Part shown: piece after piece, positions 1 through 29,820 of the stretch | How positions within the stretch are numbered: position 1 is the first letter of the stretch | How the letters are laid out: each line of letters begins with the position of its first letter | From: Rhodosorus marinus CCMP1338 | Lineage: Eukaryota > Plantae > Rhodophyta | NCBI GenBank assembly: GCA_029953675.1 | Contig: JAMWBK010000014.1 | Location: 1 to 47,807, forward strand | Length of the DNA stretch: 47,807 nt | Reading direction: 5' to 3' | The notes under the pieces: generated by a model | The model's database searches: none | The model's input: the letters and a program-made list of their open reading frames with translations, nothing else | What the model was told of the DNA's origin: nothing | Translations under genes and position numbers: made by a program

Positions 1-158
1 ACGAACGAATGGTTTAATCGGAGGCTGAAAAAAACCCCGAGGGAAAAAGACTAAGCGCGGCGAAGTACTCGCGAAGTACTCGCGGCATTCATCAAAGCGG
101 CATTCATGCGCCACAGCAGGAAACTTAAACGTAAACAACGATTGAAGACGGTCAGGGC
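1..158 (-). mobile_element. RLE-A non-LTR retrotransposon 3'-end fragment, cut by the window edge
   Basis: Matches the 3' end of 31061-33504: end of the RLE coding region, T-rich UTR, then CAGCCTCCGATTAAACCATTC(GTTC)n. Has a 10-bp duplication at 61-80. Confidence 0.9.
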
Positions 159-329
159 AATCTTTCAAAGAGAAAGTGGTCAAAGAGGGCTTGGTACGCC
201 GTGTGGCTCGGCAAATTCGTGGAGCGCCCCAACTGGCTATCGTTTGCAAAGCCCGTATCCCCCGTTCCTGCCGCTGGGCGTGCGGAACCTGCTGAGAACG
301 TTGGCTCCTGCAGTGGGAACGGCTTCTTT

Positions 330-453
330 GGTGGAGAGTTGTTCCATGAACGCCTGACCGTCTTCTGTTGATGGCTTCGGTTCCGCATGAATGGCCGCGA
401 TGTCCAATGCAAGGCCGCCGCTCTAGTTTTTTCAGCCTCGATTAAACCATTCG
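330..453 (+). mobile_element. Degenerate RLE-A-like 3'-end fragment
   Basis: GAGTTGTTCC..GAACGCCTGACCGTCTTC and TTTTCAGCCTCGATTAAACCATTCG resemble the RLE-A 3' terminus. Confidence 0.6.
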
Positions 454-734
454 AATGTTGAAGGCGGCTCATTCCGCAGAAAAACAAAACGCAGAGTGTT
501 CTGCTGTGTTCCCCCCGTTTTTTGTGCAGCTCGAATGAACACATCATGTTTCAAGCATTGATCCTCCTGGCTGCCATAACCGGATCTGGTGCAGAAGAGT
601 GGATAGCCGGAGCGAAAGACAACATCAAACGGGTTCAGCTACCGAAACAGAAACACTCTCAATCAACTCCTCCGAACAAAAACCGAGCAAACAACTATGA
701 CTGGAGACGTGCCCCTCCGAGGGTGAATTCTTCG

Positions 735-3627
735 CGGCGTCTCATGCTGGCGGCGGCAGATCCACGGCGCTCCCCCGCAGCCGGGAGATAACGACTAGCT
801 TGAGGGTTAGGAACAGCAAGATCAACGTATGTGGTACGGCGGCTGTCGTCACAGGTGATCACCAGGTCGGCTACACGGCGTTCATCATTTTGAAAGTCCG
901 CGACGGGTAAAGGTTTCTCACGTTCGATTTCCAGACCGGCTTGCCGGACTATAGGCCGAAGTTCCCGGTATAACAGGTTCAAGATCCGTGTGTGGCGGCG
1001 GGTTCGAGCACCTTTCACCGCCGGGCAACTAGCGAGCGTTGTCTTCAGTCTGAGAGCAGAGAGGGCACGACGGACCCATCTCGTACGGCCAAGGGGGCTG
1101 ATGTAAGCCGAGGTATAAGCGCAGTGAAGTACGCACTTCGAAATCCGACAGTGTGAGTGGCGGAAAGGCTGGTACGGTCATGAGCCACTGAGAGCTAATA
1201 ACCCCTCCAAGACTACGTAGGCGGGCGCGAGCGCGAGAAGATGAGACCATCTGCGCGAGGAGTCGGCCATATGCAGCACGGTGCAAGTCCCAAGAAAGGA
1301 TATTTTGCAGCGCATCCGTGCGTGCTTGAGCTCGGCTCCCAGCGCGCTGGGAATCATCAGGAGGATCAACTGGAACTTCTTCTTCTGCGGCAACCACTGG
1401 GTCAATCTCCCCTAGAACAGGTTCAGGCGCAGGACGAATCCCGGGGCGGAGCCTCGAGAGCGGTCAAATACAGCTCGCCAGTCAGGAAGACGGGGTTGAA
1501 CGGTTTCGGGGAGACTAGTACAGGAATTCAGGGCGGTTTGGAGCTCCAGAAACAAGTCTTGGGCGCTTTCCGGTACGCTGGGAAGCAAGACACCCCGCGA
1601 GAGGCTCGCCATCAAATTGCGGAACTTCGAGATACCCAAGCTGCTCAAAGTGGGAAGTGCGGTTCCCCAGGCCCCTACTGCAGCTGCAGGTTGGACCACA
1701 ACACGATTGCAGAGGCCCAGTCCCCCAATCGCAATGGGAGGCCTACCTGGGCGCGCACAACATCAGAGGTGGGTCGCGGCAGAGCGCTCAGCTCTTCATC
1801 GAGAAAATACCCCAGGTCACGGAAACTTTCAGCATCCGCACGAGTGGCCAAACACCGGTCCCAATGAGTTGGAAGTGAGCGAAGCCATTAGGTTAACCGC
1901 TGACTGCAACAATACCGGAAACAGCAGCAACGAGCACTGAGAAAGCCCGGAGGTAGCCGTCGAAGCTCTGCAACCAGCTGTCTGTGCTTACCGAGGAGCT
2001 GCAGCAACTCGCCTTCAACGAAGGACGGCGACCCGTAGGGGATGCCTCCGGTCTCCAAAAAGTGGACGCAGGTACCCGTGCCTGCCCAACCGATATCCTG
2101 GAACGACGCAGGTACCTGCTGCTCTTGTGCAGCTACACCTCCCCAGTAGAACGATTTGTGATGATTAACCTCCAGGTCAACCCGCGAAGCCAAGGAGCGG
2201 AGACGATCATAAGCGAGTGCTAGAGTATCAGGGGGCCCCAGGAGGCACACGTCGTCGTGGTATGCAACCGTACGAACCTGCGGGAATTCGGAGCGAAGAC
2301 AAAGCAAGACGAGTTGTAGTCCACAGGCATGTAGGAAAGGGGACAAGGGATCACCCTGTTGTACCCCTGTGCGCGCCGCAAACGTGTGTGAGGAAGCGCC
2401 AAGGGTGTCATAGGTAGCCCCCGACCAAGCGGAGAATAAAGTCTACTAACAAAGGGAAAGCCTACAGGGAAGACTTCGCGCACCACGTGCATGAGAGCCG
2501 GACGAGAGACGCGGTTGAACGCATTGGTAAAATCTACAGAGAGGAGCCCAGAATCTGGGGAGTACGCCATTTCCGAACGGAGTAAAACAGACAACAACTC
2601 ACAGCCACCACCATAGCCCACGCCTAACTGCACGTGCCCAAAGAAACGGCGGGATTCGGGAACCAGGATTTTCACTAACCATCGCGCCGCCAATTTGCGG
2701 ACCACCTCAACCAGGCCAATAGGGCGAATAGCAGGGCTCGAGGCCGTGTGGCCGGGCTTCGAAAGCAGACACAACTGCGAACGACCGACCAAGAACCACG
2801 CACACTCACACAGGGGATCACCATTCACAAGCGCTTCGACCACCCACGCCAACGCCTTCAAACCTTCATCACTTAAGAAACGGAGATATTCCACCCGCAG
2901 CCCCGAGGGCCCTGGGGAACGGCCCTTCGGAGCATCATGAACCAACCTCACGCACCGCCTCCAGATTGACCACTAACCGCGCACTGGGATGTGGCGCGGC
3001 GCGGTACTCTTCCAACACTGATTCAAACGAGGAGTCCCAAGGGGAGCCTTCCGAGGGAAAGAGCAAACGGAGCGGTGAAGAAAGATCATCGGAGTATGGA
3101 ACCACAGGTTGCCGCTGCTGGAGGATCCCGGCTGCCCGCCGCAGATCACCGCCTGCCACCGCGTGACGCGCCCGATTCTGTCGAGAAGACCTAAAAGCTG
3201 AGGGAGCACTAGGAGAAAAGGAAGAGAGAGAAGCGAAACAAAGACGTTCGAGGTCCTCAAAGTCGCCGGAAAGGAACATTTGCAGTTTTCGGCGAGGGTG
3301 GACCCGGCGAGGATGTGGGTTGAGGGGGACGGTAGAGGAGGTGAGCACGAGGCGGGGAAAAAAGAACAAGAGTTCCCAGCGAAGAGAGCAGTGAGGGGTC
3401 GCGGCGACCTGCTGCCAGAGAAAATCCAACACCAATCCTAGGGGCTTATGAAGTCGACGAAGGAGCCGTACGGCCGTGCTCTGACGACAAAGGGGAAGGG
3501 AACCGTCCGGGTAGGAGGCGACAAGGTGCGAAAACCACGAGAGAACACGCTCATGCCAGGCTGAGCGGTCACTGGTAAACAGGGGTAACCGGGACGACAC
3601 GCACGCGGAGGAGGAAGACTCAGGCAT
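735..3627 (-). pseudogene. RLE-A ORF2 (RT, CCHC finger, restriction-like endonuclease), frameshifted and 3'-truncated
   Basis: Pieces 2935-3627, 2220-2951, 1888-2346, 1412-1699, 1029-1397 and 695-1018 join into the protein seen in 31025-33443. ATG at 3625-3627. Confidence 0.9.
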
Positions 3628-4919
3628 CGGGCCTCCCCTCAGTCGGGAAGGCAGATCGAATATCCGGAGGAGGTGCCTCGGAGGGAGGCTCAGGAGCCGC
3701 ACGACGCTTACGTGGGGGGCGCACGAAGGAACTAAAAGACCTGAAGAAAGTAGACACAGGGTTTTCAGCAGCGGAGTCTTGACTGAGGGTGTCCAGAGCC
3801 AGCGGATTCGGAGAGGCCGATGGTGCTTCTGCCATGTCGGTGTCACGAGCCTCGGAGACAGGGCGAGGGGAGGAAGGGGTGCTCAAGAGTCAGCGGCAGA
3901 AGGTCAAACGCAGGGTGGGCTTCCAGCAGGGTGGCCTCAGTGGAGAGGAAGGCCTCTAACGCGGTGCGGAGGACCCCGCGAGGAGGAAAACGCGCGAAGA
4001 GGCTCGCCTGTATGCGCGAGAGCCGCGCCGCATGAGTGTGTAGCGCGACAACCGAAGCCTGCGAGGCATCCAGGTTTTGCAAGGCCGACGGAGGAACCCA
4101 GCCGGCGTCAAAACGATCGAACTCGACAAACAAAGAGACATGAGGACGAGTCAGTATCATGTTGGCCAGAGCAGAGCGCTGGGGCGCGGGGGTGGTTACA
4201 AGCGATTGAAGGAACTGGTAAGCCGAGTCAGTAACAAGAAAACAGGCATGAGGGCCCGTGAAGTCCACATATAGGAATTCAGATGGGGCGACCCCAAGGG
4301 AGGAAGCCATGGTGTCGCGAAAATCGCGGTAGTGGACGGGCGCGCGGCCCCGACCACGAGAGGGGGTCTGGGGACGCACGTTCGTCATCCAAACAAAGTG
4401 GAACGGAGATAGTTGGCGAGAAGAGTCAATAGGGATGTGTTGTGGCATCATACGCACCATTGCCGTCGTGCGTTGTTCAGAAGAGCCCCTGCGCAGGACC
4501 TGCGAATAGGTCGCACGTGGGGCACTGGAGGGAGCAGGATTCGGGCCCGACGCGGGCCCAGGAGGCGTCTGTCCTTGAATAGGGGTAGGCCAGTCGGAAT
4601 CAGGAATGACCGGAGCGGAGCGCTCGGGTCGGGTGGAGGCAGGCCCCGCTGTACCGTGCGGATCCGCGGGGACGGGCACCGGGGGGTATGGGACAGGCGC
4701 GGAGGCGGAGAAGCGCTCCAAATAGGCGATCAGCAGGGGCAGGCGGTGTTCCTGGGAAGCAGTCACAAGAAGACTCGTCATTTTCGAGCAGATCCCATGG
4801 GCTAACTCGTCAGCGCAGTCCGTGAGGGTGGCCGCGGTACTAAACCCGCCCACGCTGAGCTCCACGCGCGCTGAGAGAACGGCTCCGTCCGCCGGAATGG
4901 GTGGGGAAACCCCAACCAT
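3620..4919 (-). CDS. RLE-A ORF1 (gag-like, putative RNA-binding); 1-nt frameshift in a G-run near 3877
   Basis: Same protein as the uninterrupted 432-aa ORF at 28002-29300. Lies upstream of ORF2 and overlaps its start. Confidence 0.8.
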
Positions 4920-5228
4920 AACGATAGGAAGGTGTGAAAAACCGATTCCCCCACGAAACCCCCAAAAAGAGAACTTGTTCCCAACGTTTGCAACCAAAGA
5001 AAAACCACCACGACCTCCAAGGGGCGCTAGCAACCCCCAGCACACACCACACCACTAGAAGATGCGGGGGAAAGGCTGCAGAAAGAAGCGCCTCCCACCG
5101 AAGAACACAATTGCGACTCAAAACCACCAAAAGCCAGCACCATACACCCTCACGAAACCAAAAACTGTATTGTGAACATGGTTCTCAAAAGCGCGGGAAG
5201 TTCATGTAGTTGACTGAATTTCTTTAAT

Positions 5229-5705
5229 CGAACGAACGAATGGTTTAATCGGAGGCTGAAAAAAAAAAACCCGAGGAGAAAAAAAGACTAAGCGCGGCGA
5301 AGTACTCGCGCCTCCAACATCAAAGCGGCATTCATGCGCCACAGCAGGAAACTTAAGCGGGTAAACAACGATTGAAGACGGTCAGGGCGTTCGCGGAACA
5401 ACTCCCGAATCGGAGACTGAAAGAAAAAACTTCGAGGGCAGAAAAAAGACTATGCGCGGCGAAGATCGCGCCTCCAACATCAAAGCAGCGTTCATACGCC
5501 ACAGCAAGAAACTTAAACTGGTAAACGAGGAGAGATGGTCAGGGCGTTCGCGGAACAATTCCCGAAGCCAACGAGAGTTTACGGAATCCATAAACCCAAA
5601 GCACTCAATGACCAGAGGTACCAGGCGATGACCTAGAGCCGAAGCACGAATGCCTGGGGAAGACAAAGCTCCCGCATATTTCAACTCTTTGCGACGTCTC
5701 AAGTA
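5229..5705 (-). mobile_element. Two stacked RLE-A-type 3' fragments (about 5229-5409 young, 5410-5705 older)
   Basis: RLE C-terminal coding (LVPLVIECFG) and 3' UTR occur twice head-to-tail. (GTTC)n tail at 5229-5240. Confidence 0.85.
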
Positions 5706-5714
5706 GTTTACGCC

Positions 5715-6450
5715 GGTCATTATCCTAACACCCAAGCTCTCAACCCTCTATACAGTGGTTTCTGAGCTTTTCTTAAAACATTTTGCTCAGTTCACCGTTT
5801 CACATTTTTCACACTCTTTGCCTTTTTGCCTTTTTGCCTTTTTTGCACTTTTGCCGCTACGTATGAGATGTCGCAAAGAGTTGATATATTCGGGGGCTTT
5901 GCCTTCCCCAGGGATTCGTGCTTCGGTTCTAGCTCATCGCCTGGTACCTCTGGTCATTGAGTGCTTTGGGTTTGTGGATCCCGTTGGTTCTCTGTGTTCC
6001 GTGAACGCCCTGACCGTCTGACAACCTCGTTGCTTACCTGTTTAAGTTTCTTGCTGTGGCATATGAACGCTGCTTTGATGCACGCGATCTTCGCCGTGCT
6101 TAGTCTTTTTTTCCCCTCGGGATCTCTTTCTTTTAGTCTCCGATTAAACGAATTCATTCATTTTGCCCTTTTGGCACTCTCACGTGATACCCCTCCAGGT
6201 TGGGAGTACCCCACCTATCACAAAAGAGTGTGACGAGGAGAAGGAAACAGGGGTATCACACGATGACCGAAGCTCGAATTCTAGGCAACTAAACTCAGTG
6301 ACAGTTTTGGGTTCTTGAGGGTGTATGGTGAAGTAATCCACCGCCGAATCCAACTCCGAAAACGCGCGCCTCCAAATGCACCAGTGCCCGGCCTGCTTCT
6401 GGACGTAAGCCTGCAAAGCCAGTGGCTGCCATCTCGCAGTCAAACCCTTA
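5715..6450 (+). mobile_element. RLE-C family 5' region, interrupted by an RLE-A-type fragment
   Basis: GGTCATT..GCTCTCAACCCTCTATA..CAGTGGTTTCTGAGCTTTTC and GTGATACCCCTCCAGGTTGGGAG are shared with 47047-47210 and 39860-40337(-). The 47 kb copy runs into RT motifs. Confidence 0.6.
5856..6160 (+). mobile_element. 5'-truncated RLE-A-type insertion with 7-bp TSD
   Basis: RLE C-terminus plus 3' UTR ending ATTCATTCA, flanked by TTTTGCC at 5849-5855 and 6161-6167. Confidence 0.8.
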
Positions 6451-6607
6451 CTGCTCAGGATTCTCCCCCTTAGACCCGGGAAAGTCGGTCCTACACGCTT
6501 GCACCTAGCCGCACCAAAGGTGTCCGCCGCCCGCTCCGTGAGGCTTGCGGGATTTTACCCTGTGCGTTCGGCGAGTAATCGGGGCACTCTCCACTGTGGT
6601 GGTTTTG

Positions 6608-7135
6608 ATAGTGTAGCCTGATGCGCTACGCAAGACGTAAAAGGAAAAAAATTAACTAGGGACTAGGGAGAAGAGCATGTAAGCCCAGGCGGCGGTGGCG
6701 CGCCTCGGCAAGCATGTTGCAAGAATACCGCCAGAGAGCGACACTCAAACGGCGGAGGAGCACCAGATGTTATTCAGGATGTTCGGTAAAACATTTAAGC
6801 AGCCACTCCAAGCTTGAATTTTAGGGACTAGGAAGAAGAGCATGTAAGCCCGGTCGACGGAGGCGCCCCTAGGCGAGCATGTTGCTAGAATACTGCCAGA
6901 GTGCGATACTTAAACGGCGGAGGAGCACCAGATATTCTTCAGGATGTTCGGTAAAGCGCTTACGCGGCCACTCCAAGTTTGAATTTTCCAGATGCAAAAG
7001 CTGGAACCTGTGAGACCGGCCCTCTTTCTCGGGGAGGGCCGGTCTGGCCATGCTCTCAGCGTAGCGTCGTTCCTTCATGCGTCCGAAGTCCAGAAACTGC
7101 TGTAACCCTGCGGAGAACGGCAGAAGGCAGATAGG
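6608..7135 (-). mobile_element. Two tandem RLE-B-type 3' fragments
   Basis: Encode KERRYAESMA..EHPEEY..LLRRLSIALWQY, homologous to the C-terminus of 12032-13249. The unit is repeated at 6608-6822 and 6823-7135. Confidence 0.8.
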
Positions 7136-7452
7136 TACTCTCTCTCTACTGTAGATACAACATTTTAGGGGAACAACAGTGTACGGACCAAACCGTCCGT
7201 TGGTACGGATATGTGGACCAATAGGTATGGGGTTGCAGAAAGTCATGAGTTAGACATAGTTGTAACTGCATCGTCCCAGCACTACTCCCGAATCTCTCTC
7301 ATTTTGTGAGGGACTGGGCTCGATATATGGTAGCTTGCAAGGTGCGAATGTGACAGTAGGCTGTGGAGGGTTCTCCGCTTATACTCCAGAAGTAGCCTTT
7401 AAAGAATTCATGCAAAGCGAAGTTGAAAGTATATATTTAATGGGCCCTAGCT

Positions 7453-9199
7453 TCAGCTACGCGCAATAGTACGGAGGAAGGCGGGAGTGCTAGCGTAGAG
7501 CATTGAGCCAAGTGGCTCCTTCAGTCCAAGCCGGTATGCCAATCTAGGAATGGCCAGCATTAGGTGAGCGAACTTCGGGTTGACAGCTTCCGTATAAGTC
7601 GAGGCGAGTACGTCGTTGACGATAATGGTTCCTTCGAGAGTGTGGGGGTTGTACAATCCACGACGGTTCACGAGAGAAATATTAGCGACTTTCGAGGTCG
7701 AACCATCGTATAGCGTGAGGATGTCTCCAGACGTCACGTCCTTGGCTGCTAAAAGGGTTCCTTCGATGACCATGTAGTGCCCCGCGGTCAACTCAATCAC
7801 GTGTTCACTCGTCGTTTCGATGCGCACAAACTCTGAAGTGATAGACCCGTCCTTGTGTCCAAATCCAAATACATCGCTAAAACGACCACTGGAGACCATC
7901 ACGCGATCTCCTGCACGAACTTGATCCATCCTCTTCGATGATCCGTCCTCCATTACCACCAAAGCACCTTCAGGGAAACATCCATCATTAGGTACTGTAG
8001 CTACTAGGTCATCACTGAGTTCAGCCAGAGACAGAGATCCACCGAGCTTCTTCACATTGCTTAGCATGAATTTCGTATGAGGACGGCTCGAAAGGCTCGC
8101 GTAGGCATTTTCGTATTCCGGTCTGCATGCTGCAGTTGAATAAAGGATTGGAAGAGTCGGTTTAGTATTGCGAACTTCGGACTAAACGAAACGACGCTCG
8201 GTTGGTTTGCAGAAGCGTGGAATACTCACATCCTGTCCGTTCATCCACGGCGATATAGCTTGCCACCCCGATAGCAATGTGTTCAGATGGTGTGCTTCCA
8301 GGAACGAGCAACGGACCTCCACTATCGCCGAAGCATGCCGTTCCTCGAGAACCATCATGGTTTCCATTTGAGCAAATCAGGTCAGGATCTCCAGCCTGGC
8401 CCACTAGTTCAAGAAATCTGCACTGATCAGACGGCACCACGACCGTATCCCCATACCGCATCCTTCCGTCAGCCCTATCGGCACCGGGATAACTGAGCCC
8501 GAACCCCACGGCCATAGACGGCAGTCCAGCTGGAGGAGTTTCCAAGCTGATCTTCATTATTGGAATTCCGGTCATTGGACCCGAAAGTTTGAGGAGACTC
8601 AGGTCATTCCCCGATATTACTGTCGACCTGTGGTACGCTCTGGGTATTGCAGCATTCGTGACCATATTACATACTCCATGGTCGGCAAAATAGTCTATCG
8701 TACCAGCACACACTACCAGTCGGATATTAGCAGGGATCTCATCAACGCAATGTGCTGCAGAAAGCACTATGTCCTCATCAACGATTGACCCTGTACATAC
8801 GATTCCAATCACGTTGTCCAGGCTATCAATGGCGACGATCACTCCCACGTTGGCGAACATATCACGGTTTGGCACGTGCTCGCCGTTGTAAATCCTCGAG
8901 CTCAACCACTTCTTCGCCCTGGCGACGACAGCTTGATTGTCCGCCGGTGTGATCTCCACGTCCGTAGTATTCTCGAATGTGATATATCTCGTCTCCAGCC
9001 CGATATCTTCAGGTGTATTCCCATCGAGGGCATCCTCTCGCACGTTCCCACTGTTCTCATTGATTGCTCTGTCCAGTTCATTGATTCCATCCAAAGTTAT
9101 TGCTGGCTCCATCAGGTCGACAGGAACAGCGCTCACAAAACCCAAGGCCAACACCACCAGAACACCAAGTTGAATCCGCATGATTATTTTACGCGTCAT
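7453..9199 (-). CDS. Secreted S1 (trypsin-fold) serine protease fused to a Hedgehog-type Hint/Hog domain; join(8230-9199, 7453-8129), 548 aa predicted
   Basis: Signal peptide, R|IYNG activation site, triad motifs AAHC / NDL / GDSGGP. A 100-nt intron at 8130-8229 (GTGAGT...CTGCAG, phase 1) joins in frame to the Hint ORF (G|CFP, TAGH, GLYNPHT, VNDVLAS). Confidence 0.8.
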
Positions 9200-9439
9200 C
9201 GTTTCTTCCTCTGCAAAAAACTTTCCAGAAACTGTTCACTACCTGTCCTCTCTTCTTTGAATTCTACTCTTGACCATCTATCAACCTCTTGCATGCCGTA
9301 GCCCCTCAACACCCATATATACTCACAACTCCTCAGATGGCAGTTTTACAAACCACCACCGCAAACCACCACCAATCGGAACAAAGGCACAACCCCAGAC
9401 TATCCTTCCACCCAGTAAAACCAACACCTGACAGCTCGA

Positions 9440-10600
9440 GCATGTTGGAGGCGCGCGATCTTCGCTGTGTGTAGTGTTTTTTTCCCCCTCTGGTTTTTTT
9501 CTTTCAGTCTCCCATTAAACAAATTCATTTCAGTATGCGCTGACACTAAACCATTCGTTCGACAGGAATAGGAATTCGTTTAATTGGAGCGGGCTTCAAA
9601 ATTGCTGGTCGCGGAAGCTCTTTCAGAGCTATCAACGGTCCATGGGGCTCTGGGAGATGGTACAATAGCTCTTCCGCAACACCTAAAACGTTGTTTACCC
9701 GCTTAAGTTTCCTGCTGTGGCGCATGAATGCCGCTTTGATGTTGGAGGCGCGAGTTCCTCGCCGCACTTAGTCCTTTTTTCCGGCTCGGGGGTTTTTTTT
9801 TTTCAGCCTCCGATTAAACCATTCGTTCGTCTGATCCTTGAGTTCTCTGGGATTATGGACTCCGTTGGTTTTCGTTAGCTTCTGGTTGGTCAGCTGGTTT
9901 TTTTTCCTTCAGTCTCCCGACCAAACAGAATCTTCCTATTCAATTCACGTGGTGGCATCCAGTCAAAATCGCTTCGAAACACCGGTTGATATATTTTTGT
10001 TTTTCAGTGGAGATTCAAAGGAGTCAATCAATTAAATTGAAGAGCAAGAATCGAACAGGTTCATTTGCGAAGATATGACACCACCATTCGTTTCGCAACA
10101 CCTAAAACTCGGAACATAGCCATCAGCACTGACCACGTTTTCCGTGCGACCAGCGAGGAGTTACAAAAAAAAATTGTTTTGTTTTGTTTTCGAAAATCAA
10201 CATAACATAACTCTTGTTTAAATATTGACCAATTGTGATCCGCTTCAATCATTTTCAATAATCGAACGAATGGTTTAATCGGAGGCTGAAAAAAAAAACC
10301 CCGATAGGGGAAAAAAAGACTAAGCGCGGCGAAGTACTCGCGCCTCCAACAATAATCGATGTACGACTTACTAAATATTTACACTATTCAAAAGGATATA
10401 TCGCCAAATGTCCAATCATGATTCATAGCTTGCTTCGTAAACATGGTACCACCAATCAAAGGCCCGGGAAGTTCTGTCAGAGCTATCAGGGACCATGTGC
10501 ATTGTGTTGTTAGAGATATACTCTTTCGTCGCATCGGGATGCGAAGCGTTAGCCATCAACGAACGAATGGTTTAATCGGAGGCTGAAAAAAAATAGAAAA
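9440..10600. mobile_element. Cluster of short RLE-A-type 3'-end fragments (about 9440-9560 +, 9690-9831 +, 10262-10350 -, 10558-10600 -)
   Basis: Each carries part of GGAGGCGCG...T-tract...CAGCCTCCGATTAAACCATTC(GTTC). Confidence 0.8.
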
Positions 10601-10740
10601 AAAAAAGAAGCGCTACCCACCTCCGTTTTCTTCTAAAAAAACAAACCGGCCTGGCAGTCTAGGCTATGCTAGTAATGAATTTGCTTAATTGGGGATTGAA
10701 AGAAAAAGCCCCCCCAAAAAAACCGGAAGGGAAAAAAAAT

Positions 10741-11652
10741 AGTACCAAATGGGTCGTACGGAGCTGGCGCGATGACTGTAGCTTTGTCATTGAGCTAGTG
10801 GATAACTTGGGGTTGCGTGGATGGTTCTGGCCTTTACCTCGCCAGGTTCGCAGTTCCCTTCGAAAGCGGTATTTTCTACACACCGTTCGCTGTCACAATT
10901 GAAACCGAGAGTGCCTGTTTGAGCACTCTCGGCAAAGACATTCTCCCTTTTCATTCACTGCAGCTTCCTGTAGATTGGAACAGGGGGAGAATCGTGAGGA
11001 GCTTGGAGGGGATAATTGAGGTGATTTCCTTCTAACCAAACCTTTGTAGGACCACAGCTCAGTGCCCACGACGAGGGTGGGCTCGTGATCGCAAGGCAGT
11101 CAGAACCGATCCTGCAAGTGCGAGAGGGGCACACCGATGCACATTCGAGTTCGGCAGTTCAGCCGAATTGGAACGCTTTGCCGGGTTTCAACTCTCGACA
11201 CTTGAAATCTAAGGTCAGTCATGCTCGTCTTGCGTTCGAGTCCGACTGATTCTCCCGGGCCTGGGCGTATCCGACGACCTCAAAGTCCCTATCATGACAC
11301 GAGGCTGTTTTTTTTTGTCCTCCAACTCGAAAGGCCTTTCTCTTCGTGAATCTCTTTGTGCTGAATGGAATCGAATCCCCCTTGACCCAGATTCCCGTTC
11401 TCAGTTCAGTATCGTGAACCCATCTCGCACATAAAAACTCATCCGAAAGCAGGTGTTCATTGCGGGCCTCATGCGTTGGACGGGCTCGAGATTTGCACTG
11501 CCCAGCACGTTCCCTGCAAAATCTCTCAGATCGAAGGTCCGAGTCCGCATCGTAAAGCTCTCAAACGCCGCCTCACCAGCACGTGTACCGGTTTTGGGAG
11601 CCCCAAGAACTGCCACCAACAATAAAAACCATACAACGAAAGTTCTACTCAT
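10741..11652 (-). pseudogene. Degraded paralogue of the secreted Cys-rich modular protein family
   Basis: Signal peptide. CFRMSFYVRDGFTIL..LRTGIW..RFTKR aligns with CIRAKFRADDGFQLNLLRAGAH..RFTSR of the 38739 gene. Intron at 10968-11041 and a Cys-module exon at 10838-10967. Frameshifts near 11405 and 10925. Confidence 0.65.
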
Positions 11653-11950
11653 CTTTTCTTTCTATCTAAAGAACAAAAAAAACTCATCAGAAAAAACTCC
11701 CGTCTGCCTTGAACCTCCTTCAACTCCAAACGGCCTAAGTCAAAGACCTCTACCTTCTCACCGCCACCAACCCAGCCAGCTTCTCCACCGAGAGGTTTTC
11801 AATACGCTCAACTGTTCTACCATTAGAGCCTTTACCCAGAAAGTGACGCTCATTCATTCATCTTCTCGTCCTATCCGCCAAGATAAAGGCGTCGCAACAG
11901 TTTGGTGCCTTCCAGCACAAATTTGTGTCCCCAACCCCAGAGAATTTTGC

Positions 11951-13234
11951 TGGTTTTTACTGGACTTTACTGGACTTTACTGGACTTTACACTAGCATAG
12001 CCTGAAGTGCTACGCAAGGCGTGAAGATGAACTAATAACTAGGGAGGGAAGCATGCAACCCCAGGCGCCGATGGCGCGCCTCGGAAAGCATGTCGCTGGA
12101 ATATCGCCAAAGGGAGACACTTAAACGCCTCAAGAGCGCCAAATATTCAGTAGGATGCTCAGCAAAACATGTCCGCAACCACTCTAAACCCGACTTATCG
12201 ACGTGACCAAAGCTTTCCACAATGAATGGCTGGAACCGGTGAGAGCGACCCTCAGCGCAAGGCAGACTGGCCATGCTCTCAGCATACCGTCGTTCCTTAA
12301 CTCTTCGAAGGGCTGAAGCCGCGGCCCCCCGGCGGCGGGCGGCTACGGTGAGGTGGGCGCTGGCCACGGGGCAGGTAATCGCAAGGTCCACATATGTTGA
12401 GCGTCTGGCAGCAGCGTCGGAGACGAGGAGATCGGCTATACAACGGGGCGGTGCAGAGTCCGAGATGGATCTGGGCAGTTCCGACTCAACCTCAACCGTA
12501 TGCCTTATCCGAGTCAAAAATTCGCTGAGGATGTACTTGAGGCGAGTGTGACGCCTCGTACGGAGACCTCGCAACAGTCCGCAGGAACCCAGGAAGTGGT
12601 AGCCACAAGCGTCAATCCGGCTCTCACATCCCTGACAGAAAGACGGCCGATTAGAGTGCCACGGAGCCTGTGGCAAACCGAGATAGATCCGTGTGGCAGA
12701 ACGGAACTGGAAAGCATCGAGACGATGACTCAATGACGACGGTAGAGTGGTTAACCACAAGTGCGAGAGGTGGCCTCCCATGCCGCGGAGACGAGCGGCA
12801 GTGGTAGGCGGCGTGAGAGGAGAATTGAGCATGACTGTGTGAGCGGCACTGTGTTGGCCCCAGGTGAGGCTATGTTGAATCAAATCAGTGGGGGAGCTCC
12901 ACAATCGGCTCAAACCCGGGTAGGCTGCAACAGGGGACCCGGGGCTAGCCTCTCCGTCATCGGCAAGAACTCGGTCGAGGGGACAATCCTCAATCGCTTC
13001 AGCTCGTCCCCATAACAGCTCCCTCCAAGAACGAAAGCCGGACCGATTTGCGTCCGGCACGGCGTTGCACCTCCTGAACGCGTGTTGAAGACCATCATAA
13101 ATTGTCAAAAGCGGGGGCGGCAGGGTCACTGGATCCTCGTTGGTCAAAGCTCGAGCCAAGAGGCAGGCACTTCGCATCTGGAAGGTCACCAACGTTCGCA
13201 GCGCGGTAGCCCAGGAGGCAACCGCCGCTGGCGA
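11951..13234 (-). mobile_element. RLE-B non-LTR retrotransposon, 5'-truncated; open 405-aa C-terminal ORF2 (12032-13249)
   Basis: CQGC..H..SC finger, RHTRL, IADLLV, YVDLAI, KERRY and FIVESFG motifs. 3' tail is (GTAAAGTCCA)3 GTAAAAACCA at 11951-11990. Confidence 0.9.
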
Positions 13235-13771
13235 GGACTTTACTAGCATAGCCTGAAGCGCTACGCAAGGCGTGAAGATGAACTAATAACTAGGGAGGGA
13301 AGTATGCAACCCCAGGCGCCGATGGCGCGCCTCGGAAAGCATGTCGCTGGAATATCGCCAAAGGGAGACACTTAAACGCCTCAAGAGCGCCAAATATTCA
13401 GTAGGATGCAGGTTTTTACTAGCATGGCCTGAAGTTTTACGCAAGGCGTGGACTGTAACTAAGAACTCGGGAGAGAAACGTGCAAAACCAAGCACCGATG
13501 GCGCGCCCCGGCAAGCACGCGTCTAGAATATCGCCACTGGGCGACACTGAAACGCCGTAGGAGTTTCAAGTATTCCATAGGATGCTCAGCAACTGGTTTT
13601 TACTAGCACAGCCTGAAGCGCTACGCAAGGCGTGGAATGCGACTAAGAACTAGGGATAGAAGCGTGCAAACCCAGGCGCCGATGGCGCGCCTCCGCAAGC
13701 ATGCTCTAGAATGTCGTCACAAGGCGACTCTGAAACGGCGTAAGAGTTTCAAGTATTCCATAGGATGCTCA
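13235..13771 (-). repeat. Three head-to-tail ~175-bp RLE-B 3'-end units
   Basis: Units at 13235-13409, 13410-13592 and 13593-13771, each running from (GCTGA)GCATCC to GCTAGTAAA(G/A). Confidence 0.9.
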
Positions 13772-13989
13772 TGAAGACTGGTTAGCAGACCCATTAGATA
13801 GCGAACAATAAAGGAAGCTACCGAGGTACACGTAGGAGATACTTAGGTCAACAACGCCCTCCGAATCACTTGCCCAGTATTTTCTTACATAATTCACCAG
13901 GATTTTCTAGCGAACCATAAAAACGGACGATCAAGGTATATGGAAAACATTCGTTAGAACGAGCAGTAAGAAATGTGTCTTAATTCCGA

Positions 13990-14672
13990 ACGGCACTAGC
14001 TCATCGCTTGGTTCCCCTGATCATTGAGTACTTTTGGGTTTCTGGACTCTGTTGGCTCTAGCTGGCTTCTGGGGCTGTTCCGCGAACGCCCTGCCAGTCT
14101 CCAATCGCTGTTTTACCTGCTTAAGTTTCCTGCTGTGGCGCAGGACCGCTGCTTTGATGTTGGAGGCGCGATATCTTCGCCGCGCTTAGTTTTTTTTCTT
14201 CCTCGGGGTTTTTTCTTTCAGCCTCCCGAATAAACCATTCACTCAACGGCTTCCGATAAACTGTAACTCGGTAGGATTTTCCAAAACAACAGAAAGACGG
14301 ACGACCAGGGTATAAAGACATGGAAAATATGAAACGCATGCTAACGAATTGTCAGAAACTGAGTGAATCGTTTAACGGAGGCTAAGAGAAAAAACCCTGA
14401 GGGGGAAAAAGAAGACTACGCGCGGCGAGGATCGCGCGTCTCCAACATCAAAGCCGCGTTCATGCGCCACAGCAGCGAACTTTAGCGGGTAAACAAGGAT
14501 TGGAGACGGTCCTGGGCTTCGCGGAACAACTCTCGAAGCCAGCGAGAGCCAACAGAGTCCAGAAACCCAAAGCACTCAATGATCAGAGGAACCACGCGAT
14601 GAGCTAGTGCCTACGGATGAACACCGGGAGAAGACAAAGCCTCCCCGTACTTGATCTCTTTGCGGCGTCTCA
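13990..14672. mobile_element. Convergent pair of older RLE-A-type 3' fragments (about 13990-14245 +, 14360-14672 -)
   Basis: Both carry LVPLIIE.FG coding and the 3' UTR. They face each other across ~115 bp. Confidence 0.8.
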
Positions 14673-15244
14673 TACTTATTAGACACAGAGCATCGGGACT
14701 CCCGACTTATCCGGCCGTCCATCCGAAATACATTGTCACGTCAGACCGCCCTCTCATGAACTACTTGTTCAACCCTCTTCGTCTCCTATTTTCATGACAT
14801 TCGGCGCTCCCACATAGTCTATCCCGTTCATCCCAAACTGCACTCTAACTCGGTCCCCCTCCGGTCGGAAGCAACCCATCGTTCAACCGTCTTCACCCCG
14901 TAAGCATGTGCCAACCGCAACAACATGGTGGTCTCATGGGAGGTATTCGTATCCGCTCGAGAAATGGCTCTTGGAATATTATGGTAAATTCTAGTCTCCA
15001 CCGGCATCGGATAATCTCGCCCTATCCACACAGTATGCGCCCGTTGTGAGAACGCACTTGCATGGCAGAGGTACCCCGCTTGTCAACCTGTGTCGAGAAC
15101 GGGCCAGAGCTTAGGCAAACTCGGGTTCCGCCAACTGGCGACACCTCCTTGCCTTGGAGCAGCGTCCCCCAGGGAGAGGGGCCGGGCTGCTCAGGGAGAC
15201 TTCTACCATCAGGAAAGGGTGCAGTGAGCGAATTTTTCCACCAT

Positions 15245-15870
15245 AAAAAACCCCCGCCAAAAGCACAGGGCGATACTGAAACGCCGTAAGAGTTCCAAGG
15301 ATTCCATAGGATGCTCAGCCAGACATTTCCGCAACCGCTCCAAACCCGATTTGTCCACGTGGCCAAAGCTCTCTACAATGAAAGCCTGAAACCGGTGGGA
15401 GCGACCCTCGGCGTAAGGAGACTGGCCATACTCTCAGCATACCGTCGTTCTTTCACTCGGCGAGGGGCCGAAGCGGCTGCTCCCCGGCGGAGGACGGTAG
15501 AACTGGTATGGGTACTTGCCACAGGGCATGTGATCACGAGGTCCACGTATGCTGAGCGTCTGGCGGCAGTGCCTGAGACCGATCTGGGCAGTTCCCGTTC
15601 CATCTCAACCGTATGCCCTATCCGAGTCAAAGATTCGCTGAGAATGTACTTGAGGCGAGTTTGACGCCGCGTACGGAGCCCTCTCAACAGTTCGCGATGA
15701 ACCTAAGAGGTAGCAACCACATGCGTCAATGCGACTCTCACATCCCTGACAGAAAGCGGGCCGATTAGAGCGCCACAGAGCTTGTGGCAAATCCACGTAG
15801 ATCCGTAGGGCAGTGCGGAACTGGAAGGCATCGAGACGGTGACCCAGTGACGAAGGCAAAACGGTACTTA
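15245..15870 (-). mobile_element. Degenerate RLE-B fragment
   Basis: HRLDAFQFRTA, FCQGCESRIDACG, RLKYILSE and YVDLVITCP match 12032-13249. Confidence 0.85.
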
Positions 15871-15971
15871 AATCCCTACAAGGTTTTTGCATAGCAGCGC
15901 TTGGCTGATGGTCCTTGTCGAGGCGAGGGTTACAAACAAACTTCAGTTTTAATCACGTTCCGTCACCTAGT

Positions 15972-16953
15972 TTAGTCATTGACTTCAATGCTTTTCAGAA
16001 TGTCGAAGTTATCATATGTGCCCTCAATCGTATCTATACCCTCGACCCCGTGGAAAAGTCTTGGTATCCACTCGGGCCACCGTTTGAACGCACCAGGTCG
16101 TTTCCCTTTCCCAAGTAGATCTTGGCTTGGGCTTCTCCTGCTATAACGAAATCGTCTCCTCCTTTCAGGAAAGCGGTAAGACCATCCTGTGAAAAGTAGT
16201 AACCATTAATTAAATCTTGGCCCTCGGACCCGATCACGACGTCATAACCTTTGTAAGATAGAACATAGTTCACTTTGTCGTTCTCGTCAAGGATGAACAG
16301 GTCGTTGGACTCGGTTCCAAGAAGAGGCGTAAACGGAGCCCCAACTTCCCTTCCTTCGTTAATCAGATTTGGACAGCCAATGGAGTACGGGCAGCCCTCC
16401 TCAGCGCTACATGTGCCATCATCAACGGTGACTAGCGAGTCAACGCCCGCAACCTCGACAACCGCCTCAAACAGCAGACACTGCACCGTCTCACAGCACG
16501 TTTCTGCTGCGGGGCGGGAATTTTATCAAAGCATATTCTAATCGCCCCCATCTTCTTACCGCTAGCCAGTTTGGTCTTGCTCCTCCTCCTCTGAAACTTC
16601 TCCCTGTCGTTTACTGGGATACTGCTGCAATCTGGGTGGATACCTACCCTGAGCTCCTTGATCAGAGGTGTGTCAATGTGCCTTAAGTTTAATCTCAAGC
16701 AACTTGTTGGTGCTTGCTCTACGGGGTTCTCATTTCGTACGCACAGCTTGGGAGTCTTCCCGTTCAGCTCTTTAAGCGTCAGCTCCTTGCAGTAGGATTC
16801 ACCCCAGAGAACCCTCGTTTCAACGTTGCTAGGGTCACCAGATCGAGTTCCCTCGGTAGGGTCAGGAAGATCGAAACTAGTACACGTTGTGGCATTTACC
16901 CACCCGAGACACATTGCGCCCACCACAGTCATCACCAACAACGACAACGTCAT
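15972..16953 (-). CDS. Secreted Cys-rich family protein with C-terminal RTX/hemolysin-type Ca-binding-like repeats; two 1-nt homopolymer frameshifts (near 16510 and 16055)
   Basis: Signal peptide. The N-domain is similar to the 38739 gene (LC..CLR..LRVGIH..ICFD..CC..LLFEAVV). Then GGDDFVIAG, GKGNDLVR and GVEGIDTIEG motifs. Adding one C and one T to existing runs gives one ORF. Confidence 0.7.
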
Positions 16954-17214
16954 CCTTCCAATCTATAGCCGGACCCCTACAAGCTCCTATTCCTCATAAA
17001 CCACGCCTCTCACGCTCTCTGCAGCACAGCTCTCCGAAAACCTGGACGGTCCCACGTACCGGATAACTTTGGTCTACGGCGGGCCCCTTGCGCGAGATTC
17101 GCGCTTAAGTATCTGGCTTTGCCCGCTTCTCTCCATAATTATTAGCTACCTCTCACTCCTGCTTCGGGCTACTCCTGAAAAATCAGTATTCACCAGGAAA
17201 CACGTATAAAAAAA

Positions 17215-17320
17215 AACCCAACGTCTTTTTTCTTTCAGCCTCCCATTAAACCAATTGACACACGTGTAGAAAACCCCAACGCCTGTTTTCCTTCAGCCTC
17301 CGATTAAACACAATTCATTC
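17215..17320 (+). mobile_element. Two ~45-bp RLE-A-type terminal fragments in tandem
   Basis: TTTCAGCCTCC(C/G)ATTAAAC occurs twice; the second ends ATTCATTCATC. Confidence 0.7.
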
Positions 17321-17726
17321 ATCATTTACGGTGTCCGCGGCAGGGGCTTCTCACGCACAATTTCAAGGACCGCCCTTGTTGGACGACCAGCAGAATTTCC
17401 CTGTATTCTAAATTTGTGTACAGAATGGGTTCTGGTTCAAAGGAATGATTGTTTTTTTGAAGTCCGGCTTAGCTCTGGAGAAAACCCTGTCTAGATTTCC
17501 GAAACGTGTTTTGGAATATTTTGACAAGACTTAGGCAGTAGCGGCTTCCGATCAAATGGAACTCTGTAGGATTTTCTAAAAACATGGAATAGACGATCCG
17601 AAATAAAAACATTAAAAATACAAAAATATTTCAAACAAAAAAAACGTTGGGGCCTCGGTCCTACCAAAATATTCCGAAAAAGGCATTTGAGAACCGATGG
17701 AATCTGGGTGTTTTTCTTTAGATACT

Positions 17727-20288
17727 AACGAATGGTTTAATCGGAGGCTGAAAGAAAAAACCCCGAGGGGAAAAAAAGATTAAGTGCGGCGAAGAACTCG
17801 CGCCTCCAACATCAAAGCGGCATTCATGCGCCACAGCAGGAAACTTAAGCGGGTAAACAACGATTGAAGACGGTCAGGGCGTTCGCGGAACAACTCCCGA
17901 AGCCAGCGAGAACCAACAGAGTCCATGAACCCAAAGCACTCAATGATCAGGGGTACCAAGCGATGTGCTAGTGCCGAAGCACGAACACCAGGGGAAGACA
18001 AAGCCCCCGCGTATTTGATCTCTTTGCGGCGTCTCATACTGGCGGCGGCAGATCCACGGCGCTCCCCCGCAGCCGGGAGATAACGACTAGCTTGAGGGTT
18101 AGGAACAGCAAGATCAACGTATGTGGTTCGGCTGCTGTCGTCACAGGTGATCACCAGGTCGGCTACACGGCGTTCATCATTTTGAAAGTCCGCGACGGGT
18201 AAAGGTTTCTCACGTTCGATTTCAAGACCGGCTTGCCGGACTATAGGCCGAAGTTCCCGGTATAACAGGTTCAAGATCCGTGTATGGCGGCGGGTTCGAG
18301 CACCTTTCACCGCCGGGCAACTAACGAGCAGGCGGGCGCCAAAATCTGCGTTGTCTTCAGTCTGAGAGCAGAGAGGGCACGACGAACCCATCTCGTACGG
18401 CCAGGGGGGCTGATGTAAGCCGAGGTATAAGCGCAGTGAAGTACGCACTTCGAAATCCGACAGTGTGAGTGGCGGAATGGCTGGTACGGTCATGAGCCAC
18501 TGAGAGCTAATACACCCTCCAAGACTACGTGGCGGGCGCGAGTGCGAGAGGATGAGACCATCTGCGCGAGGAGTCGGCCATATGCAGCACGGTGCAAGTC
18601 CCAAGAAAGGATAGTTTGCAGCGCATCCGTGCGTGCTTGAGCTCGGCTCCCAGAGCGCTGGGAATCATCAGGAGGATCAACGGGAACTTCTTCTTCTGCG
18701 GCAACCACTGGGTCAATCTCCACTAGAACAGGTTCAGGCGCAGGACGAATCCCCGGTGCGGAGCCTCGAGAGCGGTCAAATACAGCTCGCCAGTGGAAGA
18801 CGGGGTTGAACGGTTTCGGGGAGACTAGTACAGGAATTCAGGGCGGCTTGGAGCTCCAGAAACAAGTCTTGGGCGCTTTCCGGTACGCTGGGAAGCAAGA
18901 CACCCCGCGAGAGGCTCGCCATCAAATTGCGGAACTTCGAGATACCCAAACTGCTCAAAGTGGGAAGTGCGGTTCCCAAGGACCCTACTGCGGCTGCGGG
19001 TTGGACCACAACACGGTTGCAGAGGCCCAGTCCCCCCAATCGCAATGGGAGGCCTACCTGGGCGCGCACAACATCACAGGTGGGTCGCGACAGAGCGCTC
19101 AGCTCCTCATCGAGAAAATACCCAAGGTCACGGAAACTTTCAGCATCCGCACGAGTGGCCAACCACCGGCCCCAATGAGTTGGAAGTGAGCGGAGCCAAT
19201 ATGTTAACCGCTGACTGCAACAATACCGAAACAACAACAACGAGCACTGGAGGAAGCCCGGAGGTAGCCGTCGAAGCTCTGCAACCAGCTGTCTGTGCTT
19301 ACCGAGGAGCTGCAGCAACTCGCCTTCAACGAAGGACGGCGACCCGTAGAGGATGCCTAAGTGGACAAAACCATCCGGTCTCCAAATATCCTGGAACGAC
19401 GCAGGTACCTGCTGCTCTTGTGCAACTACACCTCCCCAGTAGAACGATTTGTGATGATTAACCTCCAAGTCAACCCGCGAAGCCAAGGAGCGTAGACGAT
19501 CATAGGCGAGCGCTAGAGTATCGGGGGGCCCCAGGAGGCACACGTCGTCGTGGTATGCAACCGTACGAACCTGCGGGAATTCGGAGCGAAGACAAAGCAA
19601 GACTAGTTGTAGTCCACAGGCATGTAGGAAAGGAGACAAGGGATCACCCTGTTGTACCCCTGTTCGCGCCGCAAACGTGTGTGAGGAAGCGCCAAGGGTG
19701 TCATAGGTAGCCCCACGACCAAGCGGAGAATAAAGTCTACTAACAAAGGGAAAGCCTACAGGGAAGACTTCGCGCACCACGTGCATGAGAGCCGGACGAG
19801 AGACGCGGTTGAACGCATTGGTAAAATCTACAGAGAGGAGCCCAGAATCTGGGGAGTACGCCATTTCCGAACGGAGTAAAACAGACAACAACTCACAGCC
19901 ACCACCATAGCCCACGCCTAACTGCACGTGCCCAAAGAAACGGCGGGATTCGGGAACCAGGATTTTCACGAACCACCGCGCCGCCAATTTGCGGACCACC
20001 TCAACCAGGCTTGGTACCCCTGATCATTGAGTGCTTTGGGTTCACGGACTCTGTTGGTTCTCGCTGGCTTCGGGAGTTGTTCCGCGAACGCCCTGACCGT
20101 CTTCAATCGTTGTTTACCCGCTTAAGTTTCCTGCTGTGGCGCATGAATGCCGCTTTGATGTTGGAGGCGCGAGTTCTTCGCCGCACTTAATCTTTTTTTC
20201 CCCTCGGGGTTTTTTCTTTCAGCCTCCGATTAAACCATTCGATTCGAACCAGGCCAATAGGGCGAATAGCAGGGCTCGAGGCCGTGTG
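17727..20288 (-). mobile_element. RLE-A copy 2, 5'-truncated, 3' end intact; ORF2 frameshifted
   Basis: RT (18776-19999) and finger-RLE (17780-18604) ORFs. Terminus GATTAAACCATTCG. Confidence 0.95.
20011..20246 (+). mobile_element. RLE-A 3' fragment nested antisense in copy 2, with 8-bp TSD
   Basis: AACCAGGC at 20003-20010 and 20247-20254. The host sequence resumes exactly. Confidence 0.92.
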
Positions 20289-29589: not shown

Positions 29590-29820
29590 TGAAGAGATTT
29601 TGCGTTATTATCAACGCAAAATCTCCAACTCCCGGATTCAAAAGTTTTTCCGCCCAGATATGTTGGGCCTTTCAAAATTCCACGCAAAGTTGGCGAAGTT
29701 GCGTATCAACTGGAGCTCGGAGGGAATCATCAAATCCATGACGTTTTTCACGTATCGCTTCTACGTAAGTTTAACGGAGCCGAACCAGAAATGACCGAAG
29801 TGACAAGGGCACTCTTACCA
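29590..29820 (+). mobile_element. Gypsy-1 integrase C-terminal (GPY/F) segment, inverted
   Basis: The + strand reads DFALLSTQNLQLPDSKVFPPRYVGPFKI..VGEVAYQLEL..IHDVFHVSLLRK. Confidence 0.85.

Follow-up and report, generated by a model that had tools for sequence, protein, structure and literature searches.

To our knowledge, protein cholesterolysis has been documented so far only for the Hedgehog ligands of animals, in which a C-terminal autoprocessing domain (Hh-C; PF01079, MEROPS family C46, structures 1AT0 and 6TYY) follows the Hedge signalling domain of a secreted precursor. The same modularity, a variable N-terminal cargo with a C-terminal Hog domain, recurs in nematode Warthog, Groundhog and Quahog proteins, in choanoflagellate Hoglet and in Glomus GIN1 (an AIG1 GTPase joined to a Hint domain), and none of these cargos is termed a protease in the literature we searched. 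For red algae and mosses, Burglin described in 2008 Hog proteins with a signal peptide, a C-terminal Hog domain and motifs J and K, in which the motif-J cysteine is replaced by Ser, Thr or Asp and no N-terminal domain is recognisable; the words "protease" and "trypsin" are absent from that paper, and it records no protease cargo (PMC2362128). The same work proposed an ancestral secreted Hog protein that added a sterol or a similar moiety (PMC2362128).

We analysed NDN08_004234, a gene of Rhodosorus marinus, in which the Hog domain is preceded by a complete catalytic S1 protease domain in place of a signalling domain or an unrecognisable cargo; the host is a unicellular red alga, unlike the animals that carry Hedgehog. 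The gene occupies positions 7453..9199 on the minus strand of contig JAMWBK010000014.1 (assembly GCA_029953675.1), and the window considered here is this contig in its entirety (47,807 nucleotides, nt). Both folds are present in the product of one gene, each with intact catalytic residues. Taken as a whole, these features are probably best explained by a secretory S1-Hog precursor that cleaves itself and yields a sterol-tethered zymogen.

Gene structure and the protease domain

From start to stop codon, the GenBank call has the same coordinates as our gene model (7453..9199, minus strand, as for all parts of the gene below), and the GenBank protein is identical to our spliced translation of 548 amino acids (aa). 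Exon 1 (8230..9199, 970 nt) encodes the signal peptide, the propeptide and the S1 protease as far as the first base of codon Ser324. It is followed by a 100-nt phase-1 intron (8130..8229, GTGAGT...CTGCAG) with a branch-like TACTAAA motif about 32 nt upstream of its 3' splice site. Exon 2 (7453..8129, 677 nt including the stop codon at 7453-7455) supplies the last S1 strand and C-terminal helix, the linker and the Hog domain. The joined exons form a single open reading frame (ORF) that reads ...ERTG-S-CRPEYENAYASLSS... at the junction; read without splicing, the frame stops after 345 aa at 8162-8164. An earlier note on this DNA had proposed that this very intron joins two ORFs, which agrees with the GenBank model, with the introns of paralogs and with homologous transcripts. 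Its description of the fusion as hidden does not hold, since the spliced 548-aa model is already public in GenBank and UniRef with both Pfam domains recorded, named only "hypothetical protein" or "Peptidase S1 domain-containing protein".

Several lines of evidence converge on this splice. Gene models of the R. marinus assembly were produced with BRAKER2 trained on RNA-seq mapping and contain about three introns per gene (PMC10250338). In the paralog NDN08_006361, the only intron (96 nt, GT..AG, phase 1) precedes the Cys220-equivalent cysteine by one codon, exactly as in NDN08_004234; that of NDN08_006607, also single and of phase 1, measures 102 nt and interrupts the same loop four codons ahead of this cysteine. 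The MMETSP transcript L001, encoding a protein of 72% aa identity (P0002), matches the window in two blocks, with the intron left out between them. For another homolog, transcriptome data (MMETSP Transcript_13903 / Transcript_13905) include the spliced product (P0028, 534 aa) as well as a form that keeps the intron and has two ORFs (P0004, 351 aa; P0029, 265 aa); therefore either intron retention occurs at this site or pre-mRNA was captured. Of the 23 GT..AG pairs that would preserve an open frame, 8229/8130 alone has both a consensus donor and the phase seen in the paralogs. A 103-nt splice at 8225/8123 (giving ...ERTGCEPEYENAY) is compatible with protein homology taken alone; we rejected it for its poor donor (GTATTC), its phase 2 against phase 1 in the paralogs and its departure from the annotation. 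The 48-nt alternative acceptor pointed out in the earlier note does exist; its use would retain the stop at 8162-8164 and truncate the protease, and it was likewise discarded.

The protease fold itself requires exon 2, because Cys325, the last strand (331-335) and the C-terminal helix (339-351) are all encoded there. The S1 alignment to Streptomyces griseus trypsin, obtained with phmmer against the PDB, crosses the junction (GSCRPEYENAYASLSS versus GCARPGYPGVYTEVST), in keeping with the earlier suggestion that splicing restores a plausible protease ending, and the methionine that opens the downstream "ORF" sits within the S1 C-terminal helix. From the sequence comparisons assembled here, NDN08_004234 can be taken with near certainty as a single spliced gene.

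The protein starts with a predicted signal peptide (aa1-24, MTRKIIMRIQLGVLVVLALGFVSA|VP, 9128..9199), its likely cleavage site following the strongest hydrophobic segment; with a 15-residue Kyte-Doolittle mean of 2.7, this is the sole strongly hydrophobic stretch of the protein. An N-terminal hydrophobic segment is found in every family member with a complete N-terminus; in P0008 it follows a cytoplasmic stretch of about 70 aa and thus forms an internal membrane span. Next comes a propeptide of about 78 aa (aa25-102, 8894..9127), modelled with low confidence, which ends in ...KKWLSSR|IYNG, the putative activation site. The family alignment places the I-[VYF]-N-G motif at the position of chymotrypsin Ile16-Gly19.

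The S1 domain proper (aa103-352, 8044..8893, interrupted by the intron) was recognised by Pfam (Trypsin PF00089, aa132-320, E 1e-20), by phmmer against the PDB and in structural models. In AlphaFold2, a Hog-rich alignment modelled the protease poorly and the run was repeated with trypsin sequences added; the resulting model is confident over aa110-360, with a predicted local distance difference test (pLDDT) score mostly ≥90 in the S1 domain, including the exon-2-encoded strand and helix. Foldseek aligned it to S1 proteases, prostasin and TMPRSS13 among them, with a target TM-score (TMt) of 0.82-0.87 across about 255 columns. The catalytic triad is complete, comprising His150 (8750-8752, in AAHC; chymotrypsin His57), Asp199 (8603-8605; Asp102) and Ser293 (8321-8323, in GDSGGP; Ser195), and is invariant or nearly so through the S1-Hog family. 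The cysteines 135/151, 260/276 and 289/325 are conserved and correspond to the predicted disulfide pairs 42-58, 168-182 and 191-220, the last of which joins Cys289 to the exon-2-encoded Cys325 (8125-8127). With a signal-like segment and Pfam matches to both Trypsin and Hint, the reading of a secreted S1 protease and a Hog domain in one gene is borne out.

Two features bear on how the protease would act. Thr287 (8339-8341) aligns with Asp189 of trypsin (GTACFGDS versus vDTCQGDS), and the paralogs vary here between T, A, V and G; as had been noted before, the replacement predicts, at the level of the sequence, a non-tryptic specificity. Both R102|I103-Y-N-G and Asp292, the equivalent of Asp194, are present. 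As a reading of the sequence, the earlier zymogen proposal is sound, and the accompanying idea of a two-step maturation, by activation and by Hint cleavage, appears reasonable.

A flexible linker of 21 aa (aa353-373, GGSLSLAELSDDLVATVPNDG, 7981..8043, pLDDT about 61) leads from the protease to Gly373, the residue predicted to bear the adduct. In most paralogs, protease and Hog are separated by a Pro/Thr-rich linker plus a Cys-rich module; the copy in the window has the short linker only. A close paralog represented by an R. marinus transcript (P0003, 492 aa, 66% identity over the protease) joins its protease through a Pro/Gln-rich linker to the Cys-rich module and lacks a Hog domain. The cargo is thus also found in a form devoid of the autoprocessing tail, like the nematode Hog-less "Wart-only" and "Ground-only" genes.

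The Hog domain and its family

The Hog domain is made up of a Hint module (aa374-507, 7579..7980), supported by Pfam, pLDDT and Foldseek, and a short adduct-recognition region (ARR; aa508-548, PKFAHLMLAIPRLAYRLG..., 7456..7578). The Pfam Hint model PF01079 matches aa369-524 (E 6e-26, 91.7 bits against a cut-off of 29.7), and the Hog part was modelled by AlphaFold2 with pLDDT ≥93. The top Foldseek match was 6TYY, the Drosophila Hh-C D46H variant (E 5e-13, TMt 0.83), alongside wild-type 1AT0 (TMt 0.85), followed by inteins (gp41-1, RecA) and BIL2. Inteins and bacterial intein-like (BIL) domains share the Hint fold and the first-step chemistry. However, NDN08_004234 lacks the C-extein and the arrangement of terminal Asn and +1 nucleophile: the Hog domain closes the protein, the stop codon follows directly after aa548, and a tail resembling the Hedgehog sterol-recognition region (SRR) stands at the protein end. 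An intein identity was rejected because of the missing C-extein and because intein-type Pfam Hint models stayed under threshold.

The likeness to Hh-C extends from the fold and the C-terminal site in a secreted precursor to individual motifs. At the predicted scissile bond Gly373|Cys374 (7978..7983; Cys374 = 7978-7980), Cys374 aligns with Cys1 of Drosophila Hh-C and is followed by F-P, as in the small residue|Cys-Phe junction of Hedgehog; the earlier placement of the Hint start at G|CFP was correct, as was its report of a TxxH motif, here T438-A-G-H441 (7777-7788). The ARR is predicted to form a helix, a loop and a terminal helix (helical at 508-523, 533-536 and 540-547), the first of which aligns with SRR helix 1 through the motif AHxxLxxxR (FAHLMLAIPR against lAHwgLapmR in fly and wAHrafapfR in human). 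The tail had been described as hydrophobic and SRR-like. The second part of that description stands, given the AHxxLxxxR alignment; the first does not, as the tail is amphipathic, with a 15-residue Kyte-Doolittle mean of ≤1.0 compared with 2.7 for the signal segment.

At two active-site positions the domain differs from Hedgehog. Where Hedgehog has the general base Asp46, two independent alignments place His415 (7855-7857), confirming the previously noted histidine near this position and making it a natural counterpart of the engineered D46H variant; where Hedgehog has Cys143 (SCY motif, motif J), NDN08_004234 has Thr501 (A-S-T501-Y, 7597-7599). The function at the Asp46 position may be kept with a different residue, since D46H is catalytically competent in both Drosophila and human Hedgehog. 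The exchange of Cys143 for Thr501, which the earlier note did not mention, is by sequence the more serious departure from Hedgehog.

To place these residues in their family, we used aa345-548 as the query of an exhaustive phmmer search through 1.84 billion cluster representatives; 5,952 proteins matched at E ≤1e-3, of which 260 reached E ≤1e-30. Among the best 150 of the 5,952 matches, the Hog domain lies at or near the C-terminus in all 150. Conservation was counted in alignment columns over the 149 closest Hog domains among the matches listed. Cys374 is present in 148/149, the following Phe in 147/149 and Pro in 140/149; within TxxH, His441 is found in 149/149 and Thr or Ser at position 438 in 148/149. 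The column of His415 holds His in 145/149, and that of Thr501 holds Thr in 127/149, with 10 Cys and 6 Ser. In the ARR, Ala511, His512, Leu515 and Arg519 are kept in 127-146 of 149 domains (85-98%). The presence of motifs J and K, with the motif-J cysteine exchanged, is in keeping with Burglin's account of the Hog domains of red algae and mosses (PMC2362128). A further residue, Thr503 (window 7591-7593), two after the Cys143 equivalent (A-S-T-Y-T), occurs in 149/149; Drosophila Hedgehog has Ala there, which makes this a clade-specific feature.

Recognisable cargos were counted in 98 longer Hog members, including NDN08_004234. Trypsin is the commonest (9), followed by Fasciclin (5), Spondin_N (4), pentapeptide repeats (2), FG-GAP (1) and Temptin (1); the remaining longer members have no Pfam cargo domain. 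Besides NDN08_004234, no fewer than 12 cluster representatives show the S1-Hog fusion. Three such genes belong to the sequenced R. marinus strain (NDN08_004234, NDN08_006361 and NDN08_006607), and a fourth Rhodosorus group is represented by transcripts only (P0046), which brings the total to at least four paralog groups. Additional S1-Hog proteins were found in culture transcriptomes (three genes in JGI 3300016877, one in JGI 3300016811), and a more distant one, with an N-terminal membrane span, in run SRR6342624. The identity with the GenBank protein and the recurrence of the fusion in paralogs and transcripts speak against a chance arrangement; a profile search with the S1-Hog alignment was dominated by animal polyserases and yielded no new fusions. 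In one relative, P0055 (L004 418-2067), the protease reads LVTALC in place of AAHC and so lacks its catalytic His; its Hog domain has Lys in the column of Asp46/His415 and retains Cys in that of Cys143. Judged by these residues, P0055 may combine a pseudo-protease cargo with an altered Hog active site. It is encoded on a 6.5-kb "transcript" contig that holds four genes on both strands.

Proposed maturation and its alternatives

We propose the following maturation of the precursor, arranged as signal peptide, propeptide, S1 protease, 21-aa linker and Hog domain (Hint plus short ARR). In the endoplasmic reticulum (ER), Cys374 would attack the carbonyl of Gly373 with the assistance of Thr438 and His441 in an N-to-S acyl shift. 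A nucleophile bound at the Hint/ARR interface, most likely a 3-beta-hydroxysterol, would then resolve the thioester, with His415 acting as the general base. The product would be a protease with a sterol ester at Gly373, tethered through the 21-residue linker to the outer membrane face, and the Hog fragment (aa374-548) would be discarded. The tethered zymogen would subsequently be activated by a cut after Arg102, whereupon Ile103 could pair with Asp292. Self-cleavage of the Hog domain at G|C appears likely from the conservation and structural comparison; that the adduct on the protease is a sterol is a more tentative proposition, to which we assign slightly less than even weight.

In its protease, the proposed product resembles the animal TMPRSS family and prostasin, chymotrypsin-fold zymogens at the cell surface, a location that is likewise proposed for NDN08_004234. 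It would differ in the means of attachment. Type II transmembrane serine proteases owe their attachment to a membrane-spanning helix and prostasin to a glycosylphosphatidylinositol (GPI) anchor; here, the anchor would be a C-terminal sterol ester put on by a self-cleaving domain. No report of sterol-ester anchoring of a protease was found in the literature searched.

A sterol is favoured as the nucleophile because those elements of the SRR that the protein has in common with Hedgehog are conserved, because His is a proven substitute for Asp46 and because cholesterol accumulates in red seaweeds, of which it is the main sterol (PMC5104453). In Drosophila, the D46H (D303H) variant transfers cholesterol with near wild-type efficiency, has the same pKa and structure as the wild type and accepts more sterols (PMC9163320); D46H Hedgehog is also processed in 293T cells (PMC12054796). 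Since the N-terminal cargo of Hh-C can be swapped for unrelated polypeptides with retention of activity (PMC13060885), a protease cargo should pose no mechanistic obstacle.

Several points weigh against this proposal. Cys143 of Hedgehog was reported to be indispensable, with C143A and C143D blocking processing, and to form a branched thioester (PMC12054796). With Thr501 in its place, the second half of the mechanism may differ from that of Hedgehog; the residue could form an oxyester at most, or the branched step could be skipped. The tail is shorter than that of Hedgehog, whose longer SRR bears an HWY motif (PMC9163320): the ARR falls short of the fly SRR by about 20-25 residues, and the Hedgehog alignments of NDN08_004234 show no counterpart of HWY. 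Paralogs differ in the residue before the activation site (R, M, F or K), which makes the activation step uncertain. Finally, the literature searched contained neither biochemistry of non-metazoan Hog proteins nor a sterol profile of Rhodosorus.

The altered second-step features (His for Asp46, Thr501 for Cys143, a shorter ARR), set beside first-step residues that are invariant, would also suit a Hog domain whose thioester is resolved by water. The Hog domain would then be a removable C-terminal pro-domain, serving in folding, ER quality control or latency, and the protease would be secreted in soluble form. Vertebrate SHhC constructs do autoprocess hydrolytically and spontaneously (PMC13060885), and cholesterol addition by nematode Hog proteins is described as unresolved (PMC2362128). 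Simple hydrolysis, however, could dispense with both His415 and the SRR helix-1 motif, which are nevertheless conserved (145/149 and 85-98%), and D46H is competent as a general base for sterols; we consider cleavage without lipidation unlikely, albeit a serious contender. Less probable still is an acceptor other than a sterol, such as another lipid, a glycan or a cell-wall or mucilage polymer, with the His-for-Asp exchange reflecting that acceptor. The shorter tail without HWY would fit such an acceptor, as would the broadened substrate tolerance of D303H (PMC9163320) and Burglin's neutral term "adduct recognition region", chosen as the adduct of non-Hedgehog Hog proteins is unknown (PMC2362128). 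The argument from His fails, given that D46H Hedgehog uses cholesterol efficiently; moreover, the Hedgehog-conserved part of the SRR is retained, no candidate for an alternative acceptor or binding module is visible, and sterols are the only substrates in the literature searched. For the same reasons, the conclusion drawn earlier from His415, that it suggests a different nucleophile, cannot be upheld: His is the norm of the clade and a D46H structure is the top structural match. Nor did we find evidence supporting the wall anchoring that the earlier note had envisaged.

The remaining two alternatives concern whether the fusion is cleaved or made at all. If the Hog domain stayed uncleaved, the full-length protein would be the working form, with Hint and ARR as a C-terminal module for binding or membrane association. 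Nothing speaks directly in favour of this, and the near-invariant Cys, the invariant His of TxxH and a structure close to active Hh-C make it very improbable, because such conservation fits a catalytic site rather than a binding module. A pair of separate genes, or an annotation artefact with the unspliced 345-aa protease as the functional product, could draw on the intron-retaining homolog transcripts (P0004 and P0029) and on the 48-nt acceptor that keeps the stop. Yet the unspliced product would be devoid of the last beta-strand and the C-terminal helix, inside which the first downstream Met lies, the intron is kept in two paralogs, and the fusion is encoded by spliced transcripts of homologs and found in the further cluster representatives; this explanation hardly merits consideration. 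The self-cleaving, sterol-tethered zymogen accordingly remains our preferred reading, with the strength stated above for each of its parts.

Contig surroundings and implications

Retrotransposon remnants of the alga abound on this small contig: domains of reverse transcriptase, RNase H/integrase and retroviral-type aspartyl protease are encoded by ORFs at 18776-19999(-), 29748-30995(-), 31025-32395(+) and 33499-34713(-). Positions 1-19199 of the window contain two gene calls only, the S1-Hog gene and a 262-aa gene without Pfam domain at 16034-16953(-). Tandem repeats with units of about 165-176 nt flank the S1-Hog gene (6657-6987 and 13239-13771); their consensus units are alike by eye, and they may belong to one dispersed repeat family. 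A further tandem array at 21746-23505 consists of 13.5 copies of a 132-nt unit (77% matches) and overlaps an ankyrin-repeat ORF (21236-23041, plus strand), 132 nt corresponding to four 33-residue ankyrin units.

That red algae possess Hog proteins with varied secreted cargos has been known since 2008; the protease cargo appears to be new, in that our full-text literature searches found no description of a trypsin-Hog architecture. A Hog domain on a complete, apparently active protease would carry this chemistry over to enzymes and into an alga only distantly related to animals. Hh-C is in use as a protein-sterol ligase, and natural His-type Hog domains might tolerate broader substrates, which could be of practical use. 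If the chemistry holds, the gene would also offer a concrete case for the ancestral secreted Hog protein proposed by Burglin.

With His in place of Asp46 and Thr in place of Cys143, the clade amounts to a natural test of the general-base swap and of the need for the Cys143 branched intermediate. As a speculative extension, which we hold to be possible rather than probable, a large non-metazoan Hog clade with His as its general base and Thr for Cys143 may sterylate enzymes rather than signalling ligands, the S1 proteases of Rhodosorus being tethered to the surface by a C-terminal cholesterol-type ester. If true, the Cys143 branched thioester would not be obligatory in sterol transfer, and Rhodosorus would provide the first instance of protein cholesterolysis in a non-animal as well as the first protease anchored by a sterol.

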